Shown here piece by piece: positions 6,188-10,372 of a stretch of DNA of 64,000 nucleotides (its first letter is position 1; the number at the start of each line of letters is the position of its first letter). The DNA comes from Oculina patagonica (lineage: Eukaryota). The notes beneath the pieces are model-generated. The model saw only the letters and a program-made list of their open reading frames with translations. It had not been told where the DNA came from and did not search any database. Location of the stretch: positions 37,386,001-37,450,000 of the forward strand of contig NC_135759.1 in assembly GCF_052425735.1 (NCBI RefSeq), given 5' to 3'. Position numbers and translations under genes: made by a program.

Positions 6188-9100
6188 TCATTTGTGGTAA
6201 TACCAAGGCACGTTGCATTCTTTTGATGTCCCGTATGTTTTGTACTTATATTCAGCAAGGCAGTCACCACCCAGTGAACCAAACAGATCAGCAGCGCTGT
6301 TATAATGCTTGTCCATGCCCCCTGTTCTCCATTCTTGTTTATATCTATCAGTCCAATAATATTGATGTATAAATATTTTGCAACCTTAGCGCGAATACTA
6401 AAGATAACTGAATACTAAAGAATATACTAAAGACAGCTAATGGTCTGTTGTCAATCTAGGACAGTTAAGTTTATTTTATTGGCTACGCCATGGTTTGCTA
6501 TTCGCCGATAGTTATGAGAAATAATTATAGGAAGGTTAATGATAAACATTGACCTTAGGAGATTATGAATGGTGTGTTTGGGGAGCGGTGGGAGGGGGGA
6601 GGGGGTTGTACACTGATTCATGGAGGTATAAGTAGAGACGAAGTAAAATGTGAGATGCTAAATGAAGGACTAATCCCTCAAGAGAGCCAAATCAGTGATG
6701 ACTGCAGCTGATACAGATACCTAGAAAACAAATATACCCTGGTTTATTTGCTATAAACCGAACGAACGAACGAATGCCTTTTTTCGGTCTATTCTTATCC
6801 AGTGTCACGACTCTCTTTCTCGCGCTTTACACTGGGAACCCGCGCCACACAGACAACCCACGCATATAATAAGAAACTGGTTTACCTGCTCGTTGTGATT
6901 CGAAGCGGTCTTTTGCGGGGAAATGTGCAGATGGGCTGTTCTTCATGGGGAGAAGTGAGTAGGAAACTGAACTCCAGGATGGCTTCTCGAACGCTAGCCT
7001 GTGTACAGCACAGGCTACTTGAACACTGAATTTCATCGTATCAATTTGATGGCTGTTTTCTTAGTTATAGCCATTCGAACGAAAAACTGTCGAAATCGAA
7101 AGAAAGTTCGAATGCTAGAAAACGCCTAGATTACCGATTGGATGGAAAAATTACAAAACTCAATTTTTTTAAGAAAATGTAGTACTGCTTGTACCTGGGC
7201 AAATTGTGCTTTATTGTGCTCATAGTTCTCCGTCTGAAAATTAAGCGGCTGATTTCTACTGAATTATATGTGACTGGCTTTAACTGGACCGGAAGTGATT
7301 TATTTTTGAGGTGATTAATCGCAAACCATGTAATTTTCTTTCGCGATTTTCACTGCTTCAGGTTTCTGAAAGTTTTGAGCACGCCGTATGCACCTTATGC
7401 ACAGACAATCGGAAGTTGCAGTCCAGTTTTGATGCCCAGCCCCTCCAGAAATGCCGCAAGTACAACAAATGTAACGCCATAGAACGAAAGTAACGTTCTA
7501 GACCGGAAGTAACACCTGTTACCGTAATGATTCGATTTAGCGCCCGGGGCGCTTATTTACTTTTGGCACCTTAAGGGAGGGCGCTTATTCGAGACAGGGC
7601 GCTTATTCGGGACAGGGCGCTTATTTAATTTTTTGCGAAACAACCAAATGTTCAAAACAAAACTTTAATACATTTTAAAATAACTAGCAATAACATAAAC
7701 TGTAACAGTAACAAATTGTTGAAAGTTCATTTACTTTTACAAGTATTATTCATTAGCAGTAAATGTATACATGTACGGTACGGTCAATGTTCATGAGTTA
7801 ATCTTTTCGACGTCGACAACTTCAGTAGAGTCAGTTAGCCACAATAGGAGCGCTTTTAAGAATAGGGTTGCGTGTAAGAACGGGGGTGCTTATAAGAATG
7901 GGGGCGCTTATTGAAATAGGGGCGCCTATTAACAAAAACACATTCGAAGGGGGGCGCTTATTCGGAAGGGGGCGCTTATTGGAAGGAGGGCGCTTAATCG
8001 AATCATTACGGTACATTATCAGTGATAATCACATCGATCACGCAACGAATCACTGTGGCACTTATTAAAATCCTGATGCAACGCAATTTACATGAGAGCA
8101 TTTTCGCAGTTCCGTCACTCAACAATCGCCGATTATTTTTAAAACATACGCCTAGATATAAAACACATGACCTTAAAGTCACAACCGAAAGTTACTACAA
8201 GGGATCGGTTTACGGCTTTGCATAAACAAAAGAATATTCGTCATTGTTTCACTTTGGGGCAGTTGCAATGCTCACGATTTGTAAAAAATTTAGAAACACT
8301 CAGGACGGAATCAAAAGTTCTCGTTGTAATCGATTGTAAATATTATGCATACCTGGAATCCAAAGAACAATGATTGGACTTTCAAGATGGAAATTTAGGT
8401 TCCATAAAACTAAAACCGAGTTATTCGACCGTTTGCCAAGCAACAGCAAAGAAAACAAAGAAGAACTATACTAGATAGGAACACTCTCTGAACTCACGTT
8501 TGTTGAGGCGACGCAGAAGGCATCTTAATGCTTGCAGTCGACGGTGTTCAAATTTAGCTCGATTTAGCAGGCATTCGGTCATAGAGAGCTGCCAGCAGCT
8601 TTAAATTAGGTTCGAATTACCTAGGCTCGCGCCGAATGCGTGGGCGATCGTGCCGGGTCAAGTGCCAGTCACTCTCCGATCCCAAGTGAGGGGAGAACAA
8701 GGAGCATCCTCGTACCCAGGGTCTTCGTTCCGTTTGACCAGCGGTCAGGAAACGAGCGTTTCTCGTTTCTTCAAGCCTGCGCAGAAGGAAGGGAGACTCG
8801 AGGGACCCTCCTCTTTCCGAGGTTCTTCATTCCCTTTGACCAGCAGTCAGGAGACTCGAGGTACCATTCTCGTACCTCGAGTCTTCGTCCCTTCTGCGCA
8901 GGCTTGAAGAAACGAGCGTTTCCTGACCGGTGGTCAAAGGGAACGAAGACCCTGGGTACAAGGATGCTCGAGGTACGAGATCGAAAATGAACAAAGAGAG
9001 GAAGAGGCGCATGGGGAGTAATGGGAAGGGGAAAAAGGTGGGAGCCTGAGGGCATGAGGCCTCGCTTCAATGTTTCAGCTTTAGCCTCTTTTTAGGATCT

Positions 9101-10372
9101 GGATGATGGTGCTGAAATCCCAGTAGTCGTTAAAATTCTTGGCTATTTCAGTCTCAGCTATCAGTAAAAAATCTCAGCTAATTTCTCAGCTACATCTGAG
9201 TATACTAGTTTTGCACGTCTCAGATCCCAGCTATCAGCCGTCATTTCTCAGCCGCAAGACAGTTAAAACTTTCATCATTTCGTAGCTATCACAGATCCAG
9301 ACCCTCTTAAATATTTTAAACTAAAGAACGGTTAAGCGGAATAATGAGGAAAAATATGATGCTGGCCAGTTTTCAGATTTTTTTTGTCCGTGGAGTACAT
9401 ACAGTTTATATGGAATGTTTGAAAGTTAACAGATAAACATTGGGGCAGGAAAGGGACTACTATATGAAAGAGAAAGAGAAAGGGATTAGGGGTATCAATA
9501 AGGGATCATGGTATCGTTTGGGGTTGCACGTGACGAAATAAAGGCTCCGTCTTATTTTGTTTGCAGGCATGAAGAGATGTATCTTGTAGGGATAAAACAC
9601 TGCTTTGGCCACGCCCAGATTGGTCCCTTTCAAATTCTCCGACGAGCATCCCCGTCCCTTTCATGCATATGACAGTGTCTCCCTCACCCGGCTGTGAACC
9701 CCTTTAAAAGATTATTTCATATGTCTGGCTTAAGTGTCTTGCTCAAGGTCATTCAGGTCGAATTGGAATTTGGAAATGTTAATTTTTCAAGAGAGCCAAC
9801 AACAAACTCAACCCACTTATGGCACCGGGCCGGAATCGAACCCTGCCCGCATATTGGTCGGGTGGCGAGCGCTCTCCCCACTGCGCCATCCCCGCGCTCC
9901 CCAAAACGCTAGATCTAAAGAATTGGACAGACTTGACATTTTACCCAATGCATTTTAAAGAAAAAAATACGGGAAAGGAATTTTACCTTATTCGAGTGAC
10001 AAAAGAAGCCGCATAAGCACCGCATTGTGACGCGTCGTGACTTCCACGGCAACGAAAATAATCGTCACAGTTCCTTGCTCTGGCCGCCTGCATGTCATTC
10101 AACGCCTTACTCATGTTTTTCACTGCACAGATAATCTGTTGAGGGGACCCACGGTACTTAGAGGCCTCGACTTTCATCCATTGCGGAACTGAGTTGGGCA
10201 ACACTTCTAACCATTTGGGAAGCGCCCGCCGAGAAAGCAATTCGCTTCTTTTCTCCTCTTGGGTTTCGCGGTCAGGGATTCCTTGGCCGAGAGAGACTTG
10301 GGAGAGGATTAAAAACACAGTCAGCATGAAGACAGCAGTGCTAGGTATACCGAGCGCCTTTTGTGTCTTCAT
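6188..10372 (-). CDS. Serum amyloid A-like, cysteine-rich secreted prepro-protein (2 coding exons, 180 aa)
   Basis: Exon 1 is 10372-9987 (ATG MKTQK..., hydrophobic signal peptide, donor AG|gtaaaa, phase 2). Exon 2 is 6344-6188 (acceptor gatag|, TGA) and is phase-compatible. The sequence MSKALNDMQAARARNCDDYFRCRGSHDASQCG aligns with SAA [32 protein letters not shown]. Exon 2 NSAADLFGSLGGD aligns with SAA [13 protein letters not shown]. The exon 2 acceptor is inferred and weak. Confidence 0.7.
7522..8011. mobile_element. Tc1/mariner-pogo-like MITE in the SAA-like intron
   Basis: TIR CCGTAATGATTCGATT(T)AGCGCC, TA TSD and internal GGGCGCTTATT repeats. Confidence 0.85.
8705..8989. mobile_element. 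Palindromic mini-transposon containing an inverted copy of its own family (8865-8966)
   Basis: The outer flanks are AACAAGGAG/AACAAAGAG. The inner copy is flanked by a perfect 10-bp TSD CTCGAGGTAC. Confidence 0.7.
9735..9900 (-). mobile_element. tRNA-derived SINE fragment
   Basis: Minus-strand A box (TGGCGCAGTGG) and B box (GGTTCGATTCC), followed by a non-tRNA body. Confidence 0.65.

Follow-up and report, generated by a model that had tools for sequence, protein, structure and literature searches.

A single-copy serum amyloid A-like precursor with six cysteines in the coral Oculina patagonica, and its neuronal orthologue in Nematostella

Introduction

In most treatments, serum amyloid A (SAA) figures as an acute-phase protein of vertebrates; what it primarily does in biochemical terms remains under debate. 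What role might an SAA-like protein then have in a stony coral, a non-bilaterian animal? The gene that raises this question lies on the minus strand of a 64,000-nucleotide stretch of the Oculina patagonica genome (contig NC_135759.1, positions 37,386,001 to 37,450,000; hereafter the window, in whose own numbering all positions are given). A preliminary description had proposed a disulfide-stabilised SAA-fold effector, released from an acidic propeptide and possibly active in immunity or venom. The reading we prefer, to which we assign a probability of roughly 55%, is that neurons secrete an SAA-fold protein which is processed by a convertase, locked by disulfides and encoded, as a pre-pro-protein of 180 aa, by a single-copy gene with two coding exons.

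Results and Discussion

Gene Structure and Expression

The gene is expressed, and its spliced coding sequence of 543 nt joins two exons. Coding exon 1 (9987..10372; codons 1-128 plus two bases, with a donor side reading GTAAAA) opens with the start codon ATG at 10372-10370 and encodes the signal peptide, pro-region and conserved N-terminal extension, followed by SAA helices 1-2 and the start of helix 3. Coding exon 2 (6188..6344) supplies the last base of codon 129, codons 130-180 and the TGA stop (6190-6188), and with them the remainder of helix 3, helix 4 and the C-terminal tail bearing Cys157 and Cys172. The two are separated by a single phase 2 intron of 3642 nt (6345..9986; GT..AG, acceptor AG at 6346-6345), which contains repeats only. 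One piece of this intron, at about 9800-9905, is tRNA-like in appearance; ARAGORN and Rfam gave no match to it.

The splice junction 9987>6344 had been predicted from the letters of the window, and transcript contigs assembled from whole-animal RNA samples confirmed it. A 672-nt record in run X1 (6106-6344 plus 9987-10419) and contigs in run X2 carry exactly this joint, skipping 3642 nt with ends reading CT..AC on the plus strand. PolyA RNA-seq from a relative (X15) joins at the same place, with 43 diverged letters at the border. In X3, one contig continues past the acceptor at 6344 as far as 6401, and may be unspliced or genomic or may use the AG at 6399-6398; that acceptor would add 53 nt and thus shift the frame off the conserved peptide.

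At the 5' end, contigs reach 10419 (X1), 10426 (X3) and 10445 (X15), giving a 5' UTR of at least 10373..10445. Because no contig includes the upstream in-frame ATGs at 10555 and 10474, the ATG at 10372 is the first in the observed mRNA. A TATAAA box (10478..10483), some 30-35 nt upstream of the furthest contig, may act as a promoter element. The 3' UTR covers at least 6106..6187, as the X1 record extends to 6106, and candidate poly(A) signals can be read at 6118-6113 (ATTAAA) and 6083-6078 (AATAAA).

Comparison with other corals further substantiates the second exon given in the preliminary description. The same exon was found 2.9-8.5 kb downstream in eight loci of seven other coral assemblies, at 74-85% identity, and spliced full-length proteins containing it are present in other corals (P0040, P0041, P0043, P0044 and KAJ7394195.1 of D. 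pertusum). Intron position and phase are identical across all coral loci and match the last intron of the Nematostella gene. The deposited protein KAL9985206.1 agrees with exon 1 (100% match over its residues 1-129) and then takes other 3' exons, at about 6997-6887 (exon 2) and 3171-3133 (exon 3). We rejected these exons: they are conserved in no coral locus, and their read depth is zero in X1-X3 and 0.5-1.4 in X15. As they are neither conserved nor covered by contigs from the species itself, the 3' end of the deposited model is probably wrong, and automated analyses of O. patagonica would consequently lose two of the six cysteines and the C-terminal third of the domain. The deposited piece at about 3.1 kb adjoins sequence that is conserved downstream in L010 and probably belongs to a neighbouring gene.

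Membership in the SAA Family

Exon 1 searched by itself matched the Pfam SAA family (PF00277) over residues 80-119 with E=1.4e-5, at 25.8 bits under the gathering cut-off of 30.8 bits. Full-length Pfam scores and AlphaFold models were obtained from orthologues standing in for the Oculina protein (P0063, P0041, P0044 and P0024). Three of these narrowly exceeded the cut-off over profile positions 7-93 of 102 (P0041, 31.8 bits; P0044, 31.3; P0024, 31.2). A family profile search matched PDB chains of SAA3 and SAA1 (E=9e-9 to 5e-7), and phmmer matched fish SAA (E=5.5e-7 in 1.8 billion sequences searched). These E values place the resemblance to SAA beyond chance and uphold the original designation of the protein as SAA-like.

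The alignments locate this similarity in the core of the family. Between the coral proteins and fish SAA, columns A, D, Y, F, G and G are invariant and D, M, A, N, R and A nearly so. The core SAA motifs, ..DM..A among them, are present, although two motifs are altered, one having Arg for His and the other D/S for N/R. Exon 2 aligns with a vertebrate segment that includes a Tyr. One MAFFT alignment (A3), in which four exon-2 fragments fell on the cysteine pattern of exon 1, was set aside in favour of another (A4). On this sequence evidence, homology to SAA extends across both exons, and we place the protein in PF00277, the 'Met-SAA' of the Lipocone superfamily.

Structure comparison points the same way. 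The AlphaFold model of P0063, which is 75% identical to the Oculina protein, aligned with SAA1 and SAA3 in VIA-align at Z 9.7-10.2 (rmsd 3.0-3.3 A over 93-94 of 99-105 residues), and the model of P0024 aligned with the SAA1 and SAA3 crystal structures at Z 8.4-9.1; the next, unrelated chains scored Z 4.6 and 3.5. Foldseek placed SAA chains at ranks 1-7 with probability 0.99-1.00, but at E values of 0.04-0.35, above 0.001. Foldseek being weak by itself, we base the fold assignment on the gap in VIA-align Z scores together with the sequence evidence. Both models are of moderate overall confidence (mean pLDDT 67-70, falling to about 45-55 in the C-terminal tail of P0063). The close orthologues are thus predicted to take the SAA four-helix bundle with its C-terminal tail, as in 4IP8 and 4Q5G, and the proposed likeness to SAA1 and SAA3 held on both orthologue models (VIA-align Z 8.4-10.2).

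A Pre-Pro-Protein With Six Invariant Cysteines

The first 29 residues (10286..10372) form a predicted signal peptide, cut after S-L-G; the 11-residue Kyte-Doolittle peak is 2.99 at residues 13-23, and small residues occupy -3 and -1. A pro-region follows (residues 30-49; 10226..10285), and it is here that the preliminary description needs partial correction. The dibasic sites it named are present, KR at 41-42 and RR at 48-49, whereas the acidity was overstated, as residues 30-49 hold five D/E and five K/R. After the signal peptide, this is the fastest-evolving part of the protein (dN/dS 0.16-0.83). A dibasic site is kept in 24 of the 25 relatives that span the region; counted from the VPxWMK motif, it is KR/KK at -22 to -20 or RR at -14/-13. 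Its position shifts among relatives (-21 KR, -14 RR or, in Nematostella, -8 KR), and P0004 has none. Proteolytic processing at KR or RR is plausible from the sequence.

Beyond the pro-region lies a conserved N-terminal extension of about 22 residues (approximately residues 50-72, LPKW..LP..VPxWMK; 10157..10225), situated before the SAA bundle. Its conservation is seen in the low dN/dS of residues 50-79 (0.11-0.21) and in high pLDDT in both orthologue models. The extension falls outside the part that superposes on SAA1, where model residues 73-177 match SAA1 4-104. The mature chain would comprise 131 aa and is basic, with 19 K/R and 12 D/E.

All six cysteines stand in exactly the contexts first listed for them: four in exon 1, at residues 82 (codon 10129-10127), 102 (10069-10067), 108 (10051-10049) and 117 (10024-10022), and two in exon 2, at 157 (6262-6260) and 172 (6217-6215). 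They are invariant across an alignment of nine full-length sequences that spans corals and Nematostella, and present in three further full-length coral proteins. This invariance makes disulfide bonding plausible, with three likely disulfides; a pairing of C82 with C117 across helices 1 and 2 is a guess. Together with the pro-region, the cysteines set the protein apart from vertebrate SAA, which has neither, just as had been claimed.

A signal peptide, a KR propeptide and a cysteine-rich chain form a layout common among cnidarian toxins. The protein might accordingly be a precursor of a nematocyst or gland-cell toxin, its signal peptide and KR-terminated propeptide routing a disulfide-rich toxin into venom. 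The same layout, however, fits precursors of neuropeptides and protein hormones and is not specific to toxins, and a helical bundle of 131 aa is far above the typical size of a cnidarian peptide toxin. The gene occurs as one copy per genome with no tandem array, its dN/dS is about 0.1-0.25, and a literature search turned up no venom-proteome report of it. For a venom family we would look for multiple copies or tandem expansion and for expression in cnidocytes or gland cells; here there is one copy, and the orthologue described below is neuronal. We regard a toxin as very improbable.

A Neuronal Orthologue in Nematostella

The Nematostella orthologue, P0024, is XP_001638561.1 (A7RQ49_NEMVE; JGI Nv239910; LOC5518558), 'Nvserum amyloid A-like'. 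The Oculina and Nematostella genes are reciprocal best hits, with one copy per genome. The two proteins share 39% identity over their whole length, the six cysteines, a signal peptide, a KR pro-region, IPxWMK, the C-terminal GGDCL...C..PW and the position and phase of the last intron. The Nematostella gene differs in one extra intron after ...YPSQ and in its pro-region, with KR only 8 residues before IPxWMK, and its protein, unlike that of the coral, retains the Arg of the G-R pair (A-D-E-Y-G-R). The coral protein has the six fixed cysteines, the VPxWMK extension and the GGDCL...C.(V/L)PW C-terminus of what is a 1:1 orthologue group across Hexacorallia. A comparison of the 6-kb flanks of the Nematostella locus with the window gave no coding similarity outside the gene itself.

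Nvserum amyloid A-like is an NvashA-dependent, neuron-specific marker of a subset of neurons (Layden et al., 2016, PMC4968017); that study names the gene without analysing the protein. The promoter fragment published for this gene (Scaffold21:1349994-1347681) terminates in an ATG that lies 355 bp upstream of the P0024 locus, which we mapped to Nemve1 DS469527.1:1344431-1347326. By orthology, the coral gene would also be expressed in neurons, an extrapolation across several hundred million years. Searching the literature for expression of the coral gene by cell type or challenge returned nothing, and the text of a stony-coral cell atlas does not mention SAA.

The venom, antimicrobial or immune-effector role suggested at the outset thus finds no backing in a single-copy gene under purifying selection whose orthologue is a neuron-specific NvashA target. 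Since the sea-anemone counterpart is a published nerve-cell marker, neither venom nor immunity is the best guess. Of these, the reading that deserves more consideration, unlikely as we hold it to be, is an immune effector or acute-phase protein whose secretion would be induced by infection or stress and which would bind bacterial outer-membrane components or lipids as an opsonin or antimicrobial. Membership in the SAA family speaks for it, as do the predicted secretion and basic mature part of the protein, the induction of an echinoderm SAA by LPS (PMC2702171) and the argument in PMC12419801, as set out in its treatment of Met-SAA, that this family has its origin in bacterial toxin domains and a role in immunity. 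Against it stand the dependence of the Nematostella orthologue on the proneural factor NvashA and the pattern of evolution, with a single copy, no tandem array or lineage-specific expansion, and dN/dS of 0.04-0.27 in the core compared with 0.16-0.88 in the signal and pro regions. Furthermore, three other ORFs in the same genome that match the SAA HMM keep the canonical His and A-N-x-x-G-R, making them better candidates for an ancestral role. Our literature search found no paper tying SAA to corals, and nothing linking it to coral immunity.

Binding or Catalysis

In our preferred account of a neuronal, convertase-processed protein, the product would enter the secretory pathway, be cleaved at KR and/or RR by an enzyme of the furin or prohormone-convertase type, and be locked by three disulfides. 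Released as a soluble folded factor from a subset of neurons or neurosecretory cells, it would probably work by binding, be it to a hydrophobic ligand, a lipid or a receptor, and not as an enzyme. We favour binding over catalysis because the helix-2 His is Arg and the helix-4 sNxxGR reads A-D-L-F-G-S.

Catalysis has nonetheless been proposed for the family, and the protein might act as a Lipocone-type enzyme on phosphate-linked lipid head groups, cutting or exchanging them, as the Met-SAA section of PMC12419801 suggests. Its predicted SAA/Lipocone fold is compatible with this, and the helix-4 position is Asp, the residue which that section gives as the inferred ancestral one. The E of DARE in vertebrates has its counterpart in Glu133 of the coral RYKQEW, an assignment of the helix-3 Glu that is ambiguous between two alignments. 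On the remaining positions of the Lipocone active-site set (H2 His, H3 Glu, H4 Asp/Asn, sNxxGR), the coral protein has Arg in helix 2 and G-S for G-R. Oculina and most orthologues have Arg in place of the helix-2 His, and corals have Ser or Leu in place of the Arg in sNxxGR; these positions were mapped by alignment, not from the figure in that paper. Catalysis by any SAA is itself still a proposal. An active enzyme therefore seems to us improbable, only slightly less so than a toxin. The close orthologues P0053, P0023 and P0028 keep the His in YFHCRG, so 'catalytically dead' would not describe the whole family.

Comparison With Known Systems

A conserved cnidarian SAA branch with three likely disulfides, a pro-region and, by orthology, neuronal expression may offer a tractable model for a role of the SAA fold that predates vertebrate lipoproteins and the acute-phase response, particularly because a Nematostella reporter line already exists. 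With vertebrate SAA (human SAA1, 4IP8/4IP9; mouse SAA3, 4Q5G/6PY0) the coral protein would share a secreted helical bundle of about 100 residues with a wrapping C-terminal tail; it shares the A..DM, D.YF..RG..DA and G columns and, from the orthologue models, a fold similarity of Z 8.4-10.2 at 24-31% identity. Vertebrate SAA differs in lacking Cys where the two align, as well as a propeptide and an N-terminal extension, and in keeping His in YFHARG and an intact A-N-E-W-G-R, where the coral has Arg and A-D-L-F-G-S. The loop between h2 and h3 lacks GPGG in the coral protein, where it is shorter by 3 residues. Vertebrate SAA is, moreover, a liver-derived, HDL-bound acute-phase protein.

Among other secreted proteins, SAA of the echinoderm Holothuria glaberrima, likened here by description, is also an invertebrate member of the family; LPS induces it, and it has been tied to the gut and to regeneration (PMC2702171). 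Cnidarian toxin and neuropeptide precursors share the signal peptide and the short pro-region with a dibasic end. The coral protein departs from them in being a large folded domain from a single-copy gene, and it has neither repeated peptide copies nor an amidation Gly.

A further frame is the Met-SAA/SAW clade as outlined by Burroughs, Nicastro & Aravind (2025, PMC12419801), in which SAA occurs in cnidarians and all other Metazoa and has a core of four helices, a short fifth helix and the sNxxGR motif in helix 4. The coral protein fits this fold and has a recognisable helix-4 motif, but the motif is degenerate and the helix-2 His is Arg. The Met-SAA section of that paper makes no mention of conserved disulfides or a pro-region. 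By analogy only, the coral protein resembles Met-Wnt as described there, an inactive secreted ligand. It is tempting, if distinctly speculative, to suppose that the neurons of hexacorals secrete an SAA/Lipocone domain, locked by disulfides and catalytically degenerate, that serves as a signalling ligand or carries a ligand, while the SAA copies with canonical motifs at other places in the genome keep an ancestral immune or enzymatic role. If so, Wnt would be joined by a second example of a bacterial-type lipid-enzyme domain becoming a Cys-rich secreted signal in early animals.

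Gene Structure and Splice Evidence

The sequence between 6000 and 10600 reads on the minus strand as a two-exon gene. A TATAAA motif (10483-10478) stands upstream of the ATG at 10372, the open frame of exon 1 (10372..9987) runs into GTAAAA, and a 3642-nt intron between 9987 and 6344 closes on an AG acceptor (6346-6345). Exon 2 (6344..6188) ends in TGA at 6190-6188, giving a coding sequence of 543 nt and 180 codons. Some 500 bp past the 3' end of the gene there is a run of 134 Ns (5566-5699).

We aligned contigs from four public sequencing runs to this region. One run (X1) yielded a single 672-nt record that covers 6106-6344 and then passes directly to 9987-10419; a second (X2) has the identical 9987/6344 joint, and polyA RNA-seq of a relative (X15) has the equivalent one. 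The skipped piece ends in CT..AC on the forward strand, which is GT..AG on the strand of the gene. A retrocopy as the source of these intron-less contigs was ruled out, because a genome search found no second copy in the species' own genome. One contig from a relative (run X3; 6171-6401) reads through the 6344 acceptor and stops at 6401, shortly beyond an AG at 6399-6398; it could come from unspliced RNA or from DNA, or reflect use of that AG as an alternative acceptor, with a shift of frame.

Eight loci in seven other coral assemblies also carry exon 2, placed 2.9-8.5 kb downstream of their exon 1 at 74-85% amino-acid identity, with an AG acceptor and the phase unchanged. Proteins of 179-181 residues with exactly this exon join are known from other corals, including the annotated KAJ7394195.1 of Desmophyllum pertusum. 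Together with the transcript joint, these loci and full-length proteins bear out the exon 2 of the preliminary description, whose gene model is preferable to the deposited one. The deposited KAL9985206.1 ("hypothetical protein ACROYT_G007579") of the stony coral Oculina patagonica was recovered by database search; its first 129 residues are identical to exon 1, and it then continues on the minus strand through ~6997-6887 and ~3171-3133 (pieces within 6884-7000 and 3133-3171). This 3' end was rejected, its pieces being neither conserved nor covered by species-level contigs: depth over the deposited exon 2 was zero in the contigs of X1-X3, and the deposited 3' exons had no match in the other coral loci searched. 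The second piece adjoins sequence (3346-3188 and 2505-2359) that is conserved downstream of one coral locus (L010), so KAL9985206.1 may be a chimera with the neighboring gene.

Repeats Within the Intron

The intron holds several repeats. A MITE-like element at 7520-8013 carries terminal inverted repeats of 26 nt that are 96% complementary and, inside them, tandem units of 18 nt (GGGCGCTTATT...); each of the four runs covers it at very high contig depth, which makes it an abundant and probably transcribed repeat. Nested palindromes at 8702-8969, with 62-nt arms 92% complementary and 45-nt arms 91% complementary, overlap another repeat of high depth in the runs, with an "opposite strands" joint at 8758/8918. 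A tRNA-like stretch (GGGGATGGCGCAGTGG...GGTTCGATTCC) at 9800-9905, also of very high contig depth, is probably a tRNA-derived SINE; ARAGORN and Rfam reported nothing for it.

Fold and Precursor Organization

The serum amyloid A (SAA) similarity claimed from sequence alone held in both profile and structure comparisons. Against the Pfam SAA cut-off of 30.8 bits, exon 1 of the Oculina gene, the only part of it scored, fell short (25.8 bits, E=1.4e-5), and full-length orthologues passed narrowly (31.8, 31.3 and 31.2 bits), aligning over profile positions 7-93 of 102 and across both exons. A profile of the coral family matched PDB SAA3/SAA1 chains (E=9e-9 to 5e-7), phmmer, run exhaustively against 1.8 billion representatives, reached fish SAA at E=5.5e-7, and the exon-2 stretch S-A-A-D-x-x-G-x-x-G-G-D-C-L-x-x-Y aligns to a vertebrate SAA segment.

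AlphaFold models of two orthologues stood in for the Oculina protein: P0024 from Nematostella (mean pLDDT 70.5, core 85-92) and P0063 from Desmophyllum (mean pLDDT 67.3), which shares 75% identity with the Oculina protein. Both superpose on SAA1/SAA3 crystal structures with Z of 8.4-10.2, the next unrelated chains scoring 3.5-4.6; P0063 fits them with an rmsd of 3.0-3.3 A over 93-94 residues, its model residues 73-177 matching SAA1 4-104. Foldseek also ranked SAA chains first, with E values of only 0.04-0.35, and the ESM Atlas likewise led to SAA clusters.

A predicted signal peptide (residues 1-29) is followed by a poorly conserved pro-region (30-49; dN/dS up to 0.83) with KR at 41-42 and RR at 48-49. 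The preliminary description called this region acidic; it carries five D/E and five K/R, and hence no net acidity. Then comes an extension, LPKW..LP..VPxWMK, strongly conserved (dN/dS 0.11-0.21) and of high pLDDT in the orthologue models, ahead of the SAA bundle, which begins at about residue 73. The core is under clear purifying selection (dN/dS 0.04-0.27). Cys82, 102, 108, 117, 157 and 172 are invariant across the eight coral loci and Nematostella, and three further full-length coral proteins have all six, whereas vertebrate SAA has no Cys at these positions.

A dibasic site at -22..-20 or -14/-13 from VPxWMK occurs in 24 of 25 relatives spanning the region. Either site can be absent, and Nematostella has a KR at -8 from a VPxWMK-type motif; proteolytic processing is thus plausible. 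In a distant relative (P0030; 279 aa, from a 51 kb ENA contig), the signal peptide is followed by a region of about 220 residues that is extremely rich in Glu, Lys and Arg and has many dibasic sites, then by ...SKRR-FPKWMN and the Cys-rich SAA core. This charged region is an extreme form of the pro-region. The Oculina product is an SAA-fold protein, predicted to be secreted, probably processed and probably disulfide-bonded.

SAA Relatives and Likely Function

According to Burroughs et al. (2025; PMC12419801), SAA belongs to a superfamily of lipid-head-group enzymes with His (H2), Glu (H3) and Asp (H4) as the ancestral residues of the active site; they assign an sNxxGR motif in H4 to the SAA-Wnt clade and regard Met-SAA as older than the cnidarian split. 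The Oculina helix-2 motif, Y-F-R-C-R-G, has Arg in place of the SAA1 His, which a few orthologues retain; in H4, Oculina reads A-D-L-F-G-S and Nematostella A-D-E-Y-G-R. Three other ORFs of the same genome, L004 (G000:C4:20908853-20909134) and the tandem copies L005/L007 (G000:C5:12287426-12289065), scored 27-29 bits with the SAA HMM, just under the cut-off, over profile positions 5-89. All three ORFs lack Cys and an obvious signal peptide, and they keep the helix-2 His (A-H...) and an intact A-N-K-R-G-R; they appear to represent a second SAA-like type in this coral, closer to the canonical one. The ancestral activity, if kept by any copy, would more likely sit in one of these three, and we suggest, with low confidence, that the gene studied here is a derived binding or signaling paralogue.

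With P0024 (XP_001638561.1 / A7RQ49; Nemve1 DS469527.1:1344431-1347326, minus strand) as query, the O. patagonica genome returned only the two exons described here, and with the Oculina exon as query P0024 was the sole full-length non-coral relative; by these searches the two are reciprocal-best orthologues. The promoter fragment of Layden et al. (PMC4968017) runs to an ATG that lies 355 bp upstream of the start given by NCBI for P0024, a position that identifies their gene as that of P0024. The Nematostella gene is an NvashA target, MEK inhibition lowers its expression, and a small neuronal subset expresses it; its reporter marks neurites, a characteristic U-shaped neuron included (Layden et al., PMC4968017). 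This published neuronal expression speaks against the venom or immune role first proposed and moves the most likely role, by orthology, to that of a neuron-secreted factor. The preliminary interpretation is thus half correct: it holds for the kind of protein, and the likely biology is neurosecretory.

At the Nematostella locus (L009:6235-7873) one further intron, of phase 0, interrupts the gene directly ahead of the first conserved Cys, after ...YPSQ; none of the corals examined has it. Corals and Nematostella share the last intron in position and phase. The coral gene belongs to a known family as a variant form, and its Nematostella orthologue has been named in the literature and never analyzed. 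The predicted layout of signal peptide, dibasic-terminated pro-region and disulfide-rich folded product is also that of protein hormones.
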